DNA of 63,603 nucleotides, the filler included, from Choristocarpus tenellus KU-1152 (Eukaryota > Protista > Phaeophyceae), in NCBI GenBank assembly GCA_964200185.2. It is 11 parts of 11 records of this genome, joined end to end, with 100 filler letters (N's around TTAATTAATTAA, not from the genome) between each part and the next. Parts side by side here need not be neighbours in the genome. Positions count along the whole stretch, not along the records: positions 50,251 to 60,997 come from CAXNAD020002739.1; 10 more parts are not named here. One strand, given 5' to 3'. The notes under the pieces were generated by a model. That model searched no databases. It saw nothing but the letters and a program-made list of their open reading frames with translations, and was not told the origin of the DNA. Below are positions 50,151-60,997 of this stretch, piece after piece; the first letter of the stretch is position 1; every line of letters begins with the position of its first letter. Position numbers and translations under genes: made by a program.

Positions 50151-50385
50151 NNNNNNNNNNNNNNNNNNNNNNNNNNNNNNNNNNNNNNNNNNNNTTAATT
50201 AATTAANNNNNNNNNNNNNNNNNNNNNNNNNNNNNNNNNNNNNNNNNNNNGGAGTGAGAGAAAAGTTTTTAAAAGAAAAGAAAGGTTGAAAACCAAAAAG
50301 ATGAAGGGGGGGGGGGGGGGGGGGATCAGTGCAGGTTAACGGTATCATCCACAGCAAAGCACTCTATCCAACCTGTAACTACACT

Positions 50386-50841
50386 GCAAAGGAATATTTA
50401 CCTATATTCCTCAACATATTAAAGGCTCTAGTATATTCATCCTTTATCTTCATTGTACCTCTGATGATATTATCTGGAGGCGTAAGTCAATATCTGAAAT
50501 ATTGCGCCGTAGTTTTTAGCTTGCAGATTTGGCCGGCATTAAATGCAGTGCTAAATCTATTCATAGAGTTATATAGCAAAGTAAGAGCAACAGGTATTAC
50601 TGGCGGTAGCCTAACATTTACTAACTTTAACGGCATTCATGAATCAATAGATACAATTGTACTTGTTGCTAGTGGTTTGCAGATGAGTATACCGTTCTCA
50701 AGTTTTGCAATAGTGCAGGGCGGAGTTGGAAGCTTTGTACATCTAGCAAGTAGCATCCAAGGCGCAAGCGCAGGAGCTGCAAGCGTTGCATCCGGAGAAG
50801 TGATAACCGGAAATAGAAGCTTTGATAATATTAGTCAAAAC
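50386..50841 (+). pseudogene. traG: Fragment of a bacterial F-type conjugative mating-pair stabilisation gene (TraG_N), Rickettsiales RAGE-like
   Basis: 152 uninterrupted codons, AKEYLPIFLNILKALVYSSFIFIVPLMILSGG...FSLQIWPALNAVLNLFI...SGLQMSIPF.SFAIVQGG...ASGEVITGNRSFDNIS, matching the TraG_N membrane region. No introns; A/T-ending codons predominate; both gene ends are missing. Confidence 0.8.
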
Positions 50842-52052
50842 ACGGGATGTATTTTACTTCAATCTCAAGGGCACCACGCCAAAGTCATCCTATGACTGCA
50901 CCTCATCATGAAATCACTCTCCTCTGATGTGCTGCATCAGTTAAGTTAGGGACAGAAAGGAAATTTCACAGGAAGGGAATAAATATAGCATAGTCTACGT
51001 AATAAGCGTAGGGTGCCGATCTTAGCAACATATCAAAAATTGCAACAGACTCAACGTTGGAGCCTCATCAGGCAAAATAATGGATTCATGCCTACCGCTG
51101 ATGTGTAGATGTATATTATACTCTTGAAAAAAGAAAGCTGTTACCTTCACAGTACCATCAACTCCATTTTTAAATTTACTTCCTACTCCAAGGCCAAGTC
51201 TCATTTAAAAAGAGCCATTAAGTCTCAGTTCATTATTTTCACAGGATGAATTTCAAAGCACTTAGGCATGGACGGCGTGCCTAACATCATCGCTTTCCCA
51301 AGTCAACACCCAGTACGTCTCAGCAACTCATCCGTTCAGGACCTTGCAGTGGAGGTGGGGGGGTATACAGGAATGGTTCAGATCCTTTCCTGTTCTAATT
51401 GGACCGTTATGTGCCACGCAAATCTAGTCTGCATGTCCTGTAGGACTGAGGGAAAATGTTATAATTGTGAACAGCAATCAAACCTACCTGCCTGCTTATT
51501 CAATCCCATCAGAATATGACATAGAATGCTGCTGGCAATACTGGCCCAATAGCAAAAACGATTAGAACCCCTACAGCTTGGTAGGTAAACCAGTTTGAGC
51601 TTTAGCGTAACATAACCCTGCTCTATCTTTGGGGTGCCTTTTCACTAATACTGTAAGCGCTGCCCAACACCAAATGTATGTTATTACCGAAAAGACTACT
51701 TTTAAAAGCTTCAGCTGTGGATACGCATTCAGGAAAGAGCTCTACCTAATCTGACAAGAAACTCCAATACGGTCAATAAGCGGAAACATAGTGCTACCAT
51801 TTTCAGCATCATTGGTTCACTTTTTCGCCACCAGTGCCCCAAAAATAAAACATGTCATAAAACATCACGATATGAGCTCAATCTGACTACTGCCAATCAT
51901 CCACCCATTTCTCGCAGTGCATTACAACTATACATCCACTGCATCACACAAGCCTACAGCGGCACAGAGAGTCGAAATGATCGACCCCAGCCGTCTCCCA
52001 ACCCCCTATGCTGCTCCAATATAGGTACCCCTTCCCTCTGGAGATGCCAACT

Positions 52053-55000
52053 TCATGTGCTTCCTTTCTTACTCTTGCGGTTCTTCTTACTACTCTTAAA
52101 TCCAGAGGAGCGGGGCTCCAACTGGTTGTCTTTGTTCTCCCCTTCCCCTTCCCCATCTTCTGCCTGAGGTTCAGGAAAAGAGTGTTGAGAAGGACAATAT
52201 AAGGTGGTAGACAAACATACTGAATTGGTGCTGTGCTAAGTACATAATACAAACAGTGCACATCATGCATGTACTCGCAAATATCAAATGGAGTACTCAT
52301 ACAATCATTCATAAATAAGCGTAACTGTTGGACCAAGTATAAAACACAAGGGGGACAAGATGTTCAGTGCTTGGAATACCACACCTGTGATGTACCTCAT
52401 GACCATGATTATTCAACATCATGGGCTGAGCACTTATTTCTTGTAAACTTTTGTGACCACACATGTCACTTGTGCTGTGCATCTATACAAAAAGTGAGGC
52501 ACACGCATATACATATACAGCCTTCCACATACCTGTTTTGTCTTGACACCTAGAGCGACACAGTAAGGCTCAACAAGGTTCTTGACCACATTAATATCCA
52601 CCTTTCCAAGTGCATCACGAACATCATCCACCTTCAAGGAGACAGCAACAGGGTGGCACAATGGTGGGGTAGAGTCGTGAGGGCTGGATAGCGTGGGAGA
52701 ATGGGGAGGTGTGTGTTTGGGGGGAGGAGTGGAGGGGGGAAGCTCTTGTCTTTGCTCACATATACACATGTACAAATCTTGGATTGTGGATACATTGATT
52801 GTATAAAAAATCAAGACAGAAAGCTTTTTTTTCCCATTTTGTATTTGGAAGTGCGGTTACGCAATAATTTGTCTTTTTCCCTCAAGTCTGATTCTTTGTA
52901 ATTGTAGAGATGTTCTATTAATACACATGGACAGCACCATAAAACAGGCAGTCCCACAGTTAAACCCCACACCTGTACTTCGTGGTATTAGCACATTCAG
53001 AATGGAAAACCCCCCCAACATAAGTCATGCCAATTCAATTCAACAAAAGAGTCAAAAGTATCTTAGAGGGTAGAGCCACGTCCATTTGGGGACCAAATTC
53101 CAATATTGCAATTTTGACATAATTTTGACTATCGTGTTTGTTAGGAGATATCAATATCCTTGTTCTGGATGCACCTTTTCATAACGTATACATTTTACGT
53201 ACTCCGAAATGATTTCGGGGTAGGTAAAATGTCATTAAAACCTGTGGGAAGCCAAGCCCCAAATGGACAAACAGGGAAAAACTCGTACCCTCTAAGATAA
53301 TTTCACTCAAAAGGCCTAAACTCTTCTACTGTTTCCATAAAACAGTGCAGTACTGCAGCACAGGGAACATTCAACGCAACAATTGCTTCAAGTATCATTT
53401 TGGGGCATGTTTAACCAGAAACTGTCACACCATCTGTCTTCCCACATAAGTAGGACATGTGTCACTCTGAGGGGAGGTGGGGGGGCAAAATCAGAGGATA
53501 CAATTTTGTAGCCCAAAATTGAACAGGCCCCCAATTTTGAAAGAGAAGTCAAGGATTCTACTGAACTCAATATTGGGGAGTTGACAGGTTGGTATAGCGG
53601 CACAAGGTAAATCAACAACAGTATGAGCAGAATCCATCATACTGTCGCTGTTTTCTTTCACATGCATACTGTACTGCTGACTAAAAACTGACCCCCTTTA
53701 CGTCCCTCAAACAAAATCTACAAAAAAAAGAAAAAAGCTTAAAGATTCTTGTCTTCGGATAGAACATACCCAGCTTCTGCATGGCAAAAATGAAACTACA
53801 ATAAAATTTCCAACCCATTATATGCTGGGTGTACTTTTCAACCAGCTGCACTCTTATTAAAATAAAATATCATTTCAAAGTAGTACTAGTACATGCAATG
53901 AAAAGACATTCTAATGGTACAAAGGGTGAGTGGGGTGGAGGGGTATGAGAAATGGGACCTGTGAAGCATTTCCTGTGGCAAGGTTTTTCTGTTAAATGCA
54001 CACCTTCAACATGTTCGGACTGTTAAGTTTGGGTGATGTTTAGCACCAACACCATGCCTAACAACAACAAGAGGACCAAAGTCATACATAACACCATTAA
54101 TGCAGCAGTGGAGAGTTTAAGTGGTAGGGTAATTGCATCTTGTCTCCTCAAAATGTGAAGTATACCAATTCTGCCCTTAAATTGGTGCAAATGCCATTCT
54201 AGGACCATGCACCCCATTTCTCAACTATTACAGCGTATCACCTCACTCAAATACTGGGATGGGTGGGTAAACACCTTTGTGCACCACACATTCTGGCAGT
54301 TGTTCAGTCAGAGTACACCTCACCTACCTCACCACCAACAATGATTGGCAACATTGCAAGACCCTAATCCAGTCACAATCATCCCCCCCCCAAAAAGGCC
54401 TAAGAAACGCCTCTTAAATTGATGCCAGACATCCAGAATGAACCACTCTTGGAACTACGTTGCTCCAAATGACCTTGTCCAGAGAGCAGTTTTGGGCTAG
54501 GTAGATATCTTAAGGCACTCAGGTCATCATATTCCAAAAACATGCCACATACTTGAAGCACTCCTGTCCTGATCCCCCTTCCCACCCAGCCAGAGTTTTC
54601 CTCACCAGTTTCCCAGGTTCTCCTTTCTCCACAAACAACAGTGTTCCTCCAGGCTTGAGCACCCTAGCCACCTCTTGAATCAGCTTCTTGGTTTCCCCCC
54701 CGGTCCCACCCTCTGAAAAGCCATAGACTGACACAACAGTGTCCATGGTACCTGTAGGGCAACCCAAAGTACCATCCACCTGTTTCCGTATCAAGGCCAA
54801 TGGTACACCTGCCTGCACTGCAGCTGTATTGACTAGTTTCTTTTTTTTTAACAATGTGAGAAGGAAAAGAAATTACAAGGGTGGGCAATGAAACAGCAAC
54901 AAAAGAGCGGTGGTTGTGAGGGGTTTGGCACATCATCATATCAGTGTTCAGAATAGAGGATGTTCAGTTGGCAGGCCACTGGATAATCCATAATATTACA

Positions 55001-56505
55001 CCATTTCTGCTGACTTCAACGGATAGGCAGCAGAGCATCATGAAGTTTTGACATCTACCACTCACAGTGTCAGCAACGGTTTCATAGGTCGTCATACTGT
55101 ACTGATAACTAAAATACTGCATCATCCCATCGTTCACACCTGGCTAGGAACACCTCTCGAATCTCTCTATTTGCCAAGTTTTCGTTCATTCCATTACTAT
55201 TGATAAGTGCCTCAAATTAAACACTGTCATGTACACACTTGTTAAACACATGCTCATGGAATAATCAATCTCAATTGGGTATATATACCCTTCACTCTTT
55301 GGCGATTTGGGGCTAATACTTCTATCAAGACTTGCCTTCTGCACCAAGAACGGGCATGGAAAGGCAAGTAATGGGTGTTCTATTGACCACAGAGAGGTGT
55401 GAAATCTTTCCCCGCCATCATACCCAATTAATGGGAGCGTAATCATCGTGACACTACATCAATGCCGCAACACTTAGCTGCAAACGAGCCTTCCCTCTAA
55501 TATCAGCACAGCACAATCTTCCCCTTCAACAAAGGTGACATAGTGAATATATTGAACCTCCTGGCCCCGACAACACACATGTGCAATGGCGACTTTGCCT
55601 TTGCCTTGGAGTATGTGGAGGGGACGAGGTGTTATGAGAACGAGGAACGTAGGGGAAGAGAATGCAGAAATCATGGAAGGTAATAATGTACGTATTTATG
55701 GAGTCCAAATATTGATCCAGCACAGTATCAAGCTCCCATTCAATTTTTGGAAACCAATTCCCATCCCCCAAGAAGGGCTATACTCCCTTGGGGTGGGGTA
55801 GGTTGGGTAGTTCTCATTGACCGATGCTGACCTCGTCCAGGTCTTTCACAGCGGACAGGATGACCCTCTTGACACCACCGTTAGGCATGTAGTACAAGGT
55901 TTTAGAGTCCTTGCTACTCAATTCCAAGACTTCCGCACCTCCGGGCACTTTCGGGATGCGGTTGCTGAGAAGAGCTGCCACCTGTTCAGATTGGGTTGTT
56001 GATTGGGGCAAGGTGATTATTTGTAAAGCGAGACCTTTCTATGCGTACGGCGTAAAATCGAAGTTAACTTCTGACTAGATATCCTCGATAGATTGGTGAG
56101 GAGCACCGAGAGGTGAGGAAAAACAAAATATCCTAGTACCACAAATATGAAGCTGTACTAGATTGCGACCGTACCTTGTACGATACTCACAATATATTGC
56201 ATGCGCCAATAGACGCCAACCTTGAACAGGGCACCCGTGGCTACAGCCCCAGCTGCCCCGACCGCCAGTGCCGTGCCAATCGTCGCAGAATCGGGGCCGG
56301 CATCAGCAGATAGAAGCGTCCAGAAAGGCAGGGTTACGGATGGGACCAGGTCGATGGAGCTCAATTTCAGCTGCGCGGATCGTCTGCCACCCCATGAATA
56401 AGAGGGGATGCTCGAGGGCAAGAACGCTGTCGCAGGGCCAACGGAAAACAAGATGGTGCAGATGGCACCCAGGTTCCTAAAGGGAATGCCAGGAAACATG
56501 ATCAT
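52053..56505 (-). CDS. Plastid-targeted SAM-dependent methyltransferase-like protein (~302 aa)
   Basis: Phase-0 exons 56505-56191, 55981-55832, 54839-54606, 52631-52533, 52163-52053. Signal peptide with an ATA-FLP (ASAFAP-type) motif. Methyltransf_11-type EVARVLKPGGTLLFVE. Motif I (VLELSSKDS) is atypical. Confidence 0.8.
53049..53308 (-). mobile_element. Intronic MITE family A copy, 260 bp, TSD AAA
   Basis: GAGTCAAAAGTATCTTAGAGGGTA ... TACCCTCTAAGATAATTTCACTC. AAA on both sides. Confidence 0.88.
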
Positions 56506-56646
56506 GTCACGCAAATGTGTTCATGTGATGGAAATGAAGAAATGGAAAAAGCGAGAAACTGCCTCTATTTCTTGGAACTCAAACACATAGATTATCCTAT
56601 GTTCAACTTTCACTTCATCTTCACTCCAATCAAAACCAATTGACCA

Positions 56647-58893
56647 ATGTTCCAACGGTTAGCAAATACTCGTGGTAAAGGGGGAAATTCACCTCTCCTA
56701 CGTGGGTTGGGCACCCTCGTAAGGGTTGTAGAAAATGGGAGACTTAAAAGGTAAGGGATGCTAAGTACTGAGGATGCACAGTGATTATCAATAGTTTTGG
56801 TTTGGCGGGTGTTACCAGTCTTCTTTGCTGCTAATATTGCGGCATGCGTTCAGGACCCCCTAGGCTGGGGGATACATCACTGTTAATGCGCTCGTCTCGG
56901 ATCTTACAATCCTGTCGCACGCTGCGGCTGCTCCTAGATCTGTAACCAGGTGCATCACGGACGAGCCACCCCCCGCACCACAACATGTGCTCGTTAATAT
57001 GCATGCAGCAGCCTGCACTCCATCCGACCTCAATATCCTCTTTGGGAAATCGATACTCCATAACCCACCACCCTTTATCGGGGGTAGCGAGGGAGTTGGC
57101 AAGGTGGCGGCGGTGGGTAAGCGAGTCTCCTCCTTGAAAGTTGGCGACACTGTCGTCCCCATATGGTCAACGAGTTGGCAGGGGACTTGGAGATCAACCG
57201 CACGTCTGCTAGAGTCCGAACTTGTGCGAGTGCCAGAAAATATGCCTCAAGAAGTTGCGGCACATGCGTCCGTGAGCGTGGCAACGGCGCTCAGGATATT
57301 GACCGACTATGTTCCGCTTGTGAATAGCGACCATGTCGTCCTTACTGGGGCGTCATCCGCCGTGGAACAGGTGCTTGAGGATACAGATTTTTGCATGGAT
57401 TTTCTCAAGGCAGGAGTGCAGTCGTACCTAAACGGTGGGGGAGGAGTACTGAATTGCAAGTTGCACGACAGTGGGTGGTTGTGCCCTCTAGATTTCCACC
57501 AGTTCTAAGTTTGTGCCACCATCCGTTTGGTGTAGACTGAGCATGTGTAGGTAGCATAGGCAATTCCCCTTTCCCAATCATATGTTTAAATCCAGTCCTC
57601 TCCTTCCAAGACGATCTTTTGCATCCTCTTTTATTTGCAAAAGGCCCTACTGCAGCTGGCGTCACGAAGAGGTCTCAATATTGTGTGTGTTGTGAAAGAC
57701 GATGCCGAGAGGGGTTTTGCACAGGAACTGGGGGCGTGGAAAGCAGTCAACCTGCAGGAGGTGAGCCTTCACCCGTCCTTCTCTTCTTTCTACGCCTATG
57801 CTTTCCTCGCTTGTTACTGTTGACGATATGGAAGTGGGAATCAACCATCCTTTCCCCATTGTGATTGCACTGTAAGTGAGAAGCAGCATGAGGTTGTCTA
57901 CATGAACGAAATGTGAAGGAAGTAAACATAGCCCTGAAATCGTACCTTTGGCGTCGTTTTGCATTCTGGGAGTATTCGATAGGCATACATTATTGCCCTC
58001 TCTTCTCTCACCCCACCCCCGTAATCCCTGAAGTTCAAGGCTCTGAGGATGAACAACGCAGCACTTGTAGCAGATGGGACAGGGGGCAAGATGGGTGCCA
58101 CAGTGGCGCGGTCGCTGAAGCTAAGAGGTTGCTTCTTGTCATACGGGGACTCTTCTCAACAAGGAATCAGGTGCTACCATACACCCCATTCAGTCTCTCA
58201 TCATCAACTGTTGCCACACATACCCCAGCAGCCTATGAGAATCAATTGCTCCCCATCCTATCTCATTCTGCCACGGGAGGGATGATCCTTATGCCTGTTT
58301 ACCATTGCTGCCTTGCATGCATCTGGAGTCCCTCCGTGCTTTACCTTTTACCCTAATCTGTGTGTCTCTTGACACTTAGCTGAGGACCACTTTGAAAAAC
58401 ATTCAATTTGAACCTCACACAACTATCCCACCATAGGTTCTGTGATTTGAAGGGACTGCTTGACTCCTTGATGTAACCAAAAATCTGCTGAAGACAAAAC
58501 TATTGATGAAATCAGATTGAATTTCAGTATACATCATTTTTATTACAGGTGTTTGTCCAGCTAATGTAAGTGTCTTGCTTCATGACAGTCTCCCTCCTCT
58601 TAAAACCATTCTGTTTTCCCCTCCCCCCCCCCTACCCCCCACCCCCCACATCCAGCTTGCCAATTGGTGGTCTCATCTTCAATGACACATACTGCCGTGG
58701 CTTCTCTATGAACCGGTGGGTCCGTGAGCAGCCTGAAAACGAGGTTTGTACTATGGTGAAGGAAGCACTTTCTGAGGCCCAGGGACTGCGCCTGCTGGGA
58801 TCTCAACACTTCCCAGTGTCAGAAGTGGAGAGAGCGGTGAAGGCAGCTGGAGGGGAGTCAGTGGCTGGTGGGGTAGTGGTATTGGATTGCTGA
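56647..58893 (+). CDS. MECR: Mitochondrial trans-2-enoyl-ACP/CoA reductase (MECR/ETR1) homologue, MDR superfamily (~356 aa)
   Basis: Phase-consistent exons 56647-56718, 56864-57370, 57644-57760, 58034-58170, 58656-58893. Arg-rich presequence. Motifs PSDLN, GGSEGVG.V.AVG, GTWRS, SYG and LIFND..RGF. Confidence 0.85.
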
Positions 58894-60353
58894 TAGACTG
58901 TGCAGTGGAGAGTGAATACAGAGGTTGAGTATGAGGGATTGGGATTTTGTGGGCTGAGTTTGTACTTTTGGTGTGTGCTTTGTTGGATTTGCTGCACTAT
59001 TTGCTATTGTAAAGAGAATGGTGGAGGTCTAGTATGTGTCTTAAGATAGGGGAGGGGTTTGGCCTTACTGTGGCTTTAATAGGCTCACGAGAAGAGGAAA
59101 CATACTTCCAGATAGATGTTGAAATGAGGTATTTTCTGATTGACATTGCTAGCATGCCCCACCATTATTTTGCGTTTTGTTTCACTGCTGGTAGATATAT
59201 GGAGGATTACCTGCAACAAAGAAGATTTTTTTTTGCTTGCACAACTTGCCTGGCTTGATTCTTGCTAATGCTTATCTATGCAAAGTAGCACACGGGAGAA
59301 CTGGGTGAGGGTGAAGGATTTTCTCCACATGTCAGATTTGATTATCTCAATCTGACATCAGTACAACACTGCTTCAGGTGTGTTTTTGTCATTGATACGT
59401 TGAATGGGTATTCAAAACAATTGCCTCATTGTAGTTAAATCAACCCATAGTGAGTCGATCAACAGTTTCCCCTCAATTTCATAGAGGGAAGGAGTTGAAG
59501 CTCTTCCCAAAATCCCTTGCTACAATATTGCTGTATGGTGTATTTCCTTATCGCTCTCAAAACACACTTTGTTCCAGCCAGGGATATATGGCTTCACAGT
59601 TGCCACAGGTGTGCTGCCATCACCAACTACATCGTGGACCAGCATGCACAGAAACTGGTTCAAGTCCTTAGGATGCAAATCACATCATTCACATGTTGAT
59701 ATCTGTGCTGACCCTTGCCTTCTGTCTGCTACCATCTACAAATGCATTGGCCAGTTCTTAAGTTGTGTCAGCTCAATGTAAAAACAGAGCACCACCAAAT
59801 GCTGGATGTTAAAAGCAATAAAAGTACAAATCAAACACACATAGAGATTCAATCTCCAATGGCAAGTTTATGAAATGATATACTGTGTACTGTGCTGCAG
59901 TCAGTTCAAGATCAGTACAATATCAAAGAGGCAATCCAGAGTGCGTAGTATATGACAGAATGTACATGTACGAGCTGTCCATGCCATAGCCCCTCTGTGA
60001 ACAGGTAAGGGTTTACATTTTGAAGTTATAAAAGATACTGCAACAAAAATATAATTGATCTAGAAACCGAGATGCACATCTGTAAAATATTTCTATGTGC
60101 ATTTCAATGGAATATAGCCCTCTGTTAACTCACCAATGTGAAGCAAAGATCGCTCTGGAGATGTTAGAGAAGATCAACAAGGCATTTGTTTGGGATAGTT
60201 GGGACTTCAGGGTTCCATTGAATGAGTTGGATCGGTGACATGACTGTCCCTACAGGAAGAGAATAGAGATTGAAGTGGCCACTTGGAAGTATGGTGGAAC
60301 AAGTGGGCAACCACCCCCCCCTTCTCCTATCTCCTACGTTCAACAAAAACGCC

Positions 60354-60584
60354 CTATTTTTCCTCCTCCAATTGGAGATTGTCCATTGCTGAACGTGCTT
60401 CCTCTGACACCATATCTTCCTCCATTGTACTATGCTTGGTATCGGTTTGCACCATCCCACTATTGCAAGCTTCACGTCTCCTCTCAAGATCCCTTTCTTC
60501 CTTTTCCTGTCGCTGTTGAGCTGACATGGAGGACTTGAGGGCTTCCTCCGCGTTGCAAACAGTTTCAAGTAGGCTGCCAATCTC
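60354..60584 (-). CDS. Probable terminal exon of an uncharacterised E-rich/coiled-coil protein
   Basis: Acceptor TTGCAG followed by EIGSLLETV...QLEEEK*. The rest of the gene is presumably off the contig. Confidence 0.45.
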   Translation of the reverse strand, partial: EIGSLLETVCNAEEALKSSMSAQQRQEKEERDLERRREACNSGMVQTDTKHSTMEEDMVSEEARSAMDNLQLEEEK

Positions 60585-60928
60585 CTGCAACAAGGGTCGG
60601 GGGGCGATTGATGTGGAATTTTAGTACTGGGTAGGGTTGGGCATTAATTTGAATAAGGTTATGATATAAAACTTAAATGTGTTGAGTCTCAACGCTAATC
60701 GAAGTTAGGTACAACGGAGTTCGAGAAAACAGGTACTGAAAAGAAAAAAGGAGATCTACCTCAAAATCGAAACCCAGTATTTATCGAGAAGTTATTCTTG
60801 TTATCCTTAAACCCATACTTATCAACAAAGCTGTCACGATGTATAACATTAGTCATGCTCGTGAACAATCCTCACCTGTTACTTGAATGAGGTTATCATA
60901 CAAAACAAATACAAAATAGAGGACACTT

Positions 60929-60997
60929 GGCTCAAAGTATCTCGGGGGGGATGCCGGCTATCCATTTGGGGTCCATTTTTTCATGTCGTGATTTTTG
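60929..60997 (+). mobile_element. MITE family B left end at a contig break
   Basis: GGCTCAAAGTATCTCGGGGGGG..TCCATTTGGGGTCC. Confidence 0.75.

Follow-up and report, generated by a model that had tools for sequence, protein, structure and literature searches.

A traG fragment of probable Megaira-like origin in the nuclear genome of the brown alga Choristocarpus tenellus

The DNA analyzed in this study (the window) is a stretch of 63,603 nt, along which all coordinates given here are counted. The piece examined, positions 50251-60997, is identical to the 10,747-nt contig CAXNAD020002739.1 (GCA_964200185.2) of Choristocarpus tenellus, an early-branching brown alga which is among the long-read species of the Phaeoexplorer project. 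The deposited annotation of this contig comprises three genes, namely a model of a TraG fragment, a methyltransferase and a reductase, the latter two being intron-bearing host genes (Table 1). Homology to bacterial traG DNA sets in sharply at 50385 and ends at 50852, which corresponds to an insert of 468 bases located 134 bases downstream of the contig start. A preliminary description of this DNA had reported a stop-free stretch at 50386-50841, about 135 bp from the contig start, adjacent to a G-run and approximately 1.2 kb from an intron-containing gene. The boundaries of this stretch proved to be almost exact, and its surroundings are as described, with 20 G at 50306-50325 and the next host coding sequence ending at 52053. 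The frame of the insert extends by chance 19 codons upstream and 14 codons downstream into the flanking DNA, resulting in a mechanical ORF of 188 aa, and when the 465 in-frame bases were shuffled, none of the 20,000 shuffles stayed open. No exact match of the 188-aa product exists among the annotated proteins, the deposited product being the shorter one of 150 aa.

Table 1. Features of the traG insert and its surroundings on contig CAXNAD020002739.1 (positions in the window).
Feature	Position	Strand	Basis
20-base G run	50306..50325		X1 k-mer contig begins here; first bin at repeat-level depth
Unique 5′ flank, 59 bases	50326..50384		No similarity to traG or donor neighbours; X1 contig depth 18.1
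Mechanical ORF, 188 aa	50329..50895	+	No ATG at start; flanks unlike donor DNA
Inserted Rickettsiaceae F-type T4SS traG fragment	50385..50852	+	Pfam/NCBIfam matches, nucleotide identity, tree
Deposited single-exon gene model, 150 aa, TraG_N	50386..50835	+	GCA_964200185.2 annotation
Spacer between insert and neighbouring transcript end (X3), 162 bases	50853..51014		Bridged by X2 contig 50599-50905; X3 contig from 51015
Methyltransferase last exon and ~1-kb 3′ UTR	51015..52162	-	X3 contig; spliced to 52532-52632
Host methyltransferase, 302 aa, several introns	52053..56505	-	Deposited model; Methyltransf_11 on exon 54519-54854
Host enoyl-reductase/zinc-ADH-like gene (ADH_N/ADH_zinc_N), 298 aa, introns	56999..58893	+	Deposited model, domain matches

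TraG is a mating-pair stabilisation protein of the F-type T4SS, encoded on a plasmid or an integrative element. The translated insert matches the Pfam profile TraG_N (PF07916) at 4.8e-20 with 72.4 bits, which exceeds the gathering score (36.1) by a wide margin; the match spans positions 322-460 of the 462 in the profile. The NCBIfam TraG equivalog is matched over positions 319-479 of 922 with 77.5 bits, a score which is far below the full-length cut-off of 600 because only a piece of TraG is present. An exhaustive HMMER search yielded 888 homologues, nearly all of them with a length of ~900-950 aa, to which the fragment aligns at approximately residues 320-480; relative to a 923-aa TraG it covers about residues 330-485, within the TraG_N region. 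The 156 TraG codons of the insert thus make up ~17% of the gene, with both ends cut in comparison to TraG proteins of ~920-950 aa, and the insert represents part of a gene rather than a TraG protein. The TraG_N identity and the truncation at both ends proposed in the preliminary description are both borne out by these profile matches and by the fact that the best relatives in the HMMER and tblastn searches are TraG. The context of an F-type tra operon, with traH upstream, is absent, and no further similarity to tra genes was found in 50251-60997. A tblastx comparison of the whole 10.7-kb piece with six donor-type tra loci likewise yielded no second bacterial fragment. A word search using the 155-aa fragment as query returned three bacterial or metagenome proteins within the length range covered and no further TraG fragment labelled as algal, which is weak evidence in view of this length limit.

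To judge the junctions of the insert, sequencing reads were used in the form of Logan contigs, whose depth is given per contig and is neither that of raw reads nor a true local depth, and in which rare variants may be invisible. The runs X1, X2, and X3 belong to one study and probably to one culture strain, with X2 coming from a different sample than X1, while X4 is a run from another organism and another study. A 2777-nt contig from X1 covers 50306-53075 with 0 differences and crosses both junctions free of the branching expected from a co-present bacterial traG. From X2, a 307-nt contig covers 50599-50905 and reaches 55 bases past the 3′ junction, and a 215-nt contig lying entirely within the insert has a depth of 5.22, compared to 5.2-6.4 for four host contigs. 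None of the contigs from X1-X3 continues into the rest of a bacterial traG, unlike in X4, and these contigs contain neither an empty-site joint nor extra traG depth. Junction-spanning sequence and a depth comparable to that of the flanking host DNA, two of the checks put forward in the preliminary description, were both obtained at the level of contigs, the first at both junctions in X1 and at the 3′ junction in X2, the second in X2.

These data bear on the possibility of a chimera or contamination, in which a read from culture-associated Rickettsiales would have been joined to the end of an algal contig, perhaps at the poly-G run. The position of the insert only 134 bases from the contig end and beside a 20-G run of a kind typical of sequencing artefacts, the non-axenic state of the Phaeoexplorer cultures, which required bacterial decontamination, and the size of the fragment, which is close to that of one short-read insert, would all be in line with such an origin. 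However, a chimeric molecule is expected at a depth near 1, and the insert was found at host-level depth in two libraries; the difference-free passage of the X1 contig through both junctions, the bridging of the 3′ junction in another sample, and the lack of any X1-X3 contig extending into the remaining traG likewise speak against it. The evidence on the 5′ side is narrower, since this side is anchored by only 59 unique bases and the sole contig bridging the 5′ junction comes from X1, a run that may have served to polish the assembly; the 55 bases 5′ of the G run (50251-50305) are not linked to the rest by the X1 contig. Taken together, the chimera or contamination reading is very unlikely and largely refuted, and the insert is a genuine nuclear insertion, continuous with intron-bearing host genes in independent read sets and at host-like depth.

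Both flanks were compared with donor-type bacterial loci by blastn-short, which gave chance matches of 10-13 bases only. The insert lies in unique-copy surroundings, an overlap of a few bases at most is possible at its borders, and its 3′ junction can be placed somewhere in 50843-50852. Four differences that are specific to the insert in comparison to all close bacterial relatives (50835, 50844, 50846, and 50848) are clustered in the final 18 bases ahead of the 3′ junction. Error-prone repair when the ends were joined may have produced them; alternatively, the junction proper may be situated near 50843, with a chance GTAT match behind it.

In a tblastn search against one genome per prokaryotic species, the best match of the insert was the traG of an uncultured Rickettsiaceae MAG, CAYGNF010000018.1 (L001), with 86% amino acid and 84.9% nucleotide identity over 50385-50852. 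Among plasmids, the best match was TraG of Ca. Megaira (Megaera) polyxenophila pPCS148 (69-73% amino acid identity), compared to ~40% for TraG of Rickettsia plasmids and ~26% for that of sphingomonads. Even closer relatives are found among metagenome contigs, with nucleotide identities of 95.9% for L014 and 95.7% for L015 over the parts covered; in both, traG adjoins genes for PLD and the coupling protein TraD. Run X4 contains a bacterial contig of 1425 nt that is 93% identical at the nucleotide level over exactly 50385-50852 and carries on at both sides into sequence like the traG of L001.

A maximum-likelihood tree of 72 rows places the insert as sister to L001 (ultrafast bootstrap/SH-aLRT 99/93), and the two nest in a clade of nine rows (98/97) which contains the TraG of pPCS148 and otherwise mostly metagenome proteins. 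The terminal branch of the insert (0.053) is shorter than that of its sister L001 (0.13). The phylogenetic position points to a Megaira-like Rickettsiaceae bacterium as the likely donor and is in accordance with the Rickettsiales origin assumed in the preliminary description. The same cannot be said of the RAGE or ICE source named there, which is not established, as the nearest named relative is plasmid-borne. In L001 and pPCS148, the F-type cluster has the order TrbC, unknown gene, TraN, TraF, TraH, TraG, with traG as the last gene, and traH also lies upstream of traG in the donor-type loci L001 and L005; pPCS148 additionally carries an integrase and traD. None of the RAGE hallmarks (an integrase, integration at the side of a tRNA gene, or Ti-like TraA/TraD beside F-T4SS genes) was found in the window.

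The closest metagenome relatives have short traG reading frames (L014:4-645 and L015:162-632). The frame of L015 is internally deleted relative to the insert, and that of L014 begins at the contig end. At least from L015, this suggests that the tra clusters of the donor clade may themselves be decaying.

Since the insert shares 93-96% nucleotide identity with bacterial contigs (X4, L014, and L015), it appears to be young. Its recency had originally been argued from the undecayed frame. The young age itself stands, on the grounds of its identity to living bacteria, whereas the argument from the frame does not, given that a mere 3.9% of all single substitutions in the insert frame create a stop. 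The probability of the frame staying open is 0.73 after 8 random changes and still 0.55 after 15, so an open frame is weak evidence for youth and no proof of selection. Substitutions were polarised using the X4 variant, rebuilt from 27 listed differences, and L001, L014, and L015 for comparison. A hand count by codon, in which a serine switch (AGT>TCG) was scored as a single synonymous change and the four changes at 50835-50848 were assumed to be X4 differences absent from the list of 27 and to belong to the insert lineage, assigned at most ~12 changes in 468 bases to the insert lineage, of which ~5 are nonsynonymous and 7 synonymous, and ~10 to that of X4, of which 1 is nonsynonymous and 9 are synonymous. 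A scripted count per site gave 3N:5S for the insert and 4N:8S for X4 (p = 1), and the nonsynonymous/synonymous contrast between insert and X4 is not significant; nor does the dN/dS of the insert lineage distinguish constraint from neutral decay. Judged from the sequences, this pattern would be compatible with most of the change having occurred while the gene was still bacterial.

Next to its age, the expression of the insert was considered. Run X3 behaves RNA-like, as it contains a 1994-nt contig of depth 272 on the minus strand which comprises 51015-52162 and 52532-52632 and thereby skips a 369-base intron with GT..AG ends on the minus strand (joint 52162/52532); introns and spacers are empty in this run. 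In contrast to the depth of 272 on the adjoining methyltransferase transcript, the depth in X3 is 0 across 50385-50920. RNA-seq coverage, which had been proposed as a further check, is thus lacking over the insert in this RNA-like run. The insert contains no start ATG, no intron, and no targeting signal, and represents an arbitrary internal cut of a polytopic membrane domain. Because the neighbouring transcript reaches a depth of 272 and nothing lies over the insert in X3, the deposited 150-aa model is probably a mis-annotated pseudogene fragment originating from homology-driven annotation.

It could be argued that the alga has domesticated the fragment, i.e., retains the open TraG_N membrane segment for its own use, as would follow from the deposited model. 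The frame is open over 188 codons, the insert has a short terminal branch in the protein tree, and the ratio of 5 nonsynonymous to 7 synonymous changes in the insert lineage is under the neutral expectation. Nevertheless, most of these changes can predate the insertion and thus stem from the bacterial phase, and at such a young age an open frame is expected by chance (P ~0.7 after 8 changes). Given also the zero RNA in X3 next to such a strongly covered neighbour and the arbitrary internal nature of a piece devoid of ATG, intron, and targeting signal, domestication appears extremely improbable. The insert is silent, has no likely function, and drifts as a pseudogene.

As to how the fragment reached its present location, we consider it quite probable that a piece of a Megaira-like traG was passively captured by the C. 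tenellus nucleus, where it now exists as a young, silent, drifting pseudogene that surfaces as an annotation artefact. DNA released from a lysed Megaira-like bacterium, living inside the cell or closely attached to it, would have reached the algal nucleus, and end joining would have incorporated a short piece of traG at a double-strand break, as is the case for NUMTs, NUPTs, and Wolbachia inserts. That a tra gene was hit may simply be due to chance, these genes being multi-copy in such bacteria; several tra clusters are found on Megaira plasmids. After its insertion, the fragment would do nothing and drift as a pseudogene. Since the pre-insertion allele is unavailable, we infer end-joining repair at the break rather than reading it from the locus.

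A more active route would be delivery by a T4SS or an ICE, in which the conjugation machinery injects DNA of the element into the algal cell in the style of the Agrobacterium T-DNA. The fragment does derive from a conjugative gene cluster, and trans-kingdom conjugation is known in the laboratory. However, the locus shows neither an oriT nor a relaxase, an integrase, or an end of the element, the piece comes from within one gene and is accompanied by no other tra remnants in 10.7 kb, and multi-copy tra genes account for the sampling without any such mechanism. Active delivery is for these reasons highly improbable, and the ICE-related DNA transfer to the host that had been raised in the preliminary description finds no support, as an internal piece of 468 bases resembles passive capture.

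To our knowledge, only a handful of cases of Rickettsiaceae in ochrophyte algae are known. A precedent for such an insert is found in the nucleus of Volvox carteri, where ~9 kb of rickettsial DNA was documented although the strain no longer contains the bacterium (Kawafune et al., 2015; PMC4324946). As in C. tenellus, DNA of Rickettsiaceae (Megaira-group) lies in an algal nucleus as the trace of a past endosymbiont. The V. carteri insert, however, is ~9 kb long, carries four genes of the chromosomal type, and belongs to a green alga, whereas the one described here consists of 468 bases from a single conjugation gene and is found in a brown alga, i.e., a stramenopile; tra genes are not mentioned for V. 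carteri (PMC4324946). With the TraG of pPCS148 and of the MAG CAYGNF01, the insert shares the gene and the clade (73% and 86% amino acid identity over the fragment, respectively), but in contrast to these it makes up only ~17% of the gene, lacks an operon, and resides in eukaryotic DNA. Nuclear Wolbachia inserts as well as NUMTs and NUPTs are similar in that short to long pieces of DNA from intracellular residents are ligated into chromosomes and are mostly silent and decaying; they differ in that the DNA here was donated by a mobile element of Rickettsiaceae and received by a brown alga, with the repair mechanism being assigned by analogy. [quoted passage not shown] This case likewise shows truncated rickettsial pieces including T4SS genes in a eukaryotic genome, although there the target is mitochondrial, the T4SS is of the P-type, and the inserts are many, in comparison to one known nuclear insert of an F-type traG in C. 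tenellus.

Megaira-group bacteria were detected in sequence data of the brown alga Nemacystus decipiens (PMC10132079) and in data of Ectocarpus sp. (bioRxiv 10.64898/2026.03.27.714854). The group is thus associated with brown algae, yet in both cases bacterial genomes were found alongside the alga and not as integrated DNA. No earlier description of rickettsial DNA inserted into the nucleus of a brown alga was found, in a literature coverage that is incomplete and hence not proof of absence. In the Phaeoexplorer screen for horizontal gene transfer, in which Rickettsia is unmentioned, singletons were excluded to avoid contamination and recent transfers; inserts of such a kind would therefore have been filtered out.

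The insert constitutes physical evidence that Megaira-like Rickettsiaceae were present within the cells of an early-diverging brown alga or intimately associated with them, and it shows that DNA of bacterial origin entered the germ line of this multicellular stramenopile. Whether the C. tenellus nucleus contains a wider and as yet unreported set of inserts from Megaira-group Rickettsiaceae, of which only this one has become visible, is doubtful, albeit conceivable; if so, the lineage would once have hosted, or would still meet, an intracellular rickettsial symbiont which has since been lost from the culture. The significance of a single 468-base fragment is modest, and consists in recording contact between host and bacterium in a little-studied lineage and in correcting the annotation, as the 150-aa model deposited for it is better regarded as a pseudogene. 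The insert also represents a candidate marker for surveying isolates of Choristocarpus and Discosporangium.

Some additional observations concern the host part of the contig. An exon of the 298-aa reductase is 98% identical to an ‘unnamed protein product [Choristocarpus tenellus],’ the one protein returned by a word search, while a comparison of a host exon with protein clusters gave generic ADH_N clusters only, with no taxon attached. The N-terminus of the methyltransferase (56410-56505, minus strand; MIMFPGIPFRNLGAICTILFSVGPATA, followed by FLP...) resembles a bipartite plastid-targeting signal of ochrophytes with F at +1 (ASAFAP type), and such a putative signal would fit the designation of this gene as a plastid gene in the preliminary description. 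An intron of the same gene harbours a MITE-like element of ~259 bases (53050-53308) with terminal inverted repeats (GAGTSAAA..TATCTTAGAGGGTA), of which a partial second copy is located at 60961-60995. In X1, the summed contig depth of this element is 1e5-1.3e6, compared to ~18 for unique DNA, which would imply a copy number in the tens of thousands for this genome. Its borders, 53055 and 53308, are sites at which many contigs end or join. Several X1 contigs fuse the 20-base G run directly to the start of the element (50325>53055), and these joints may reflect G runs flanking other copies of the element or poly-G sequencing artefacts.
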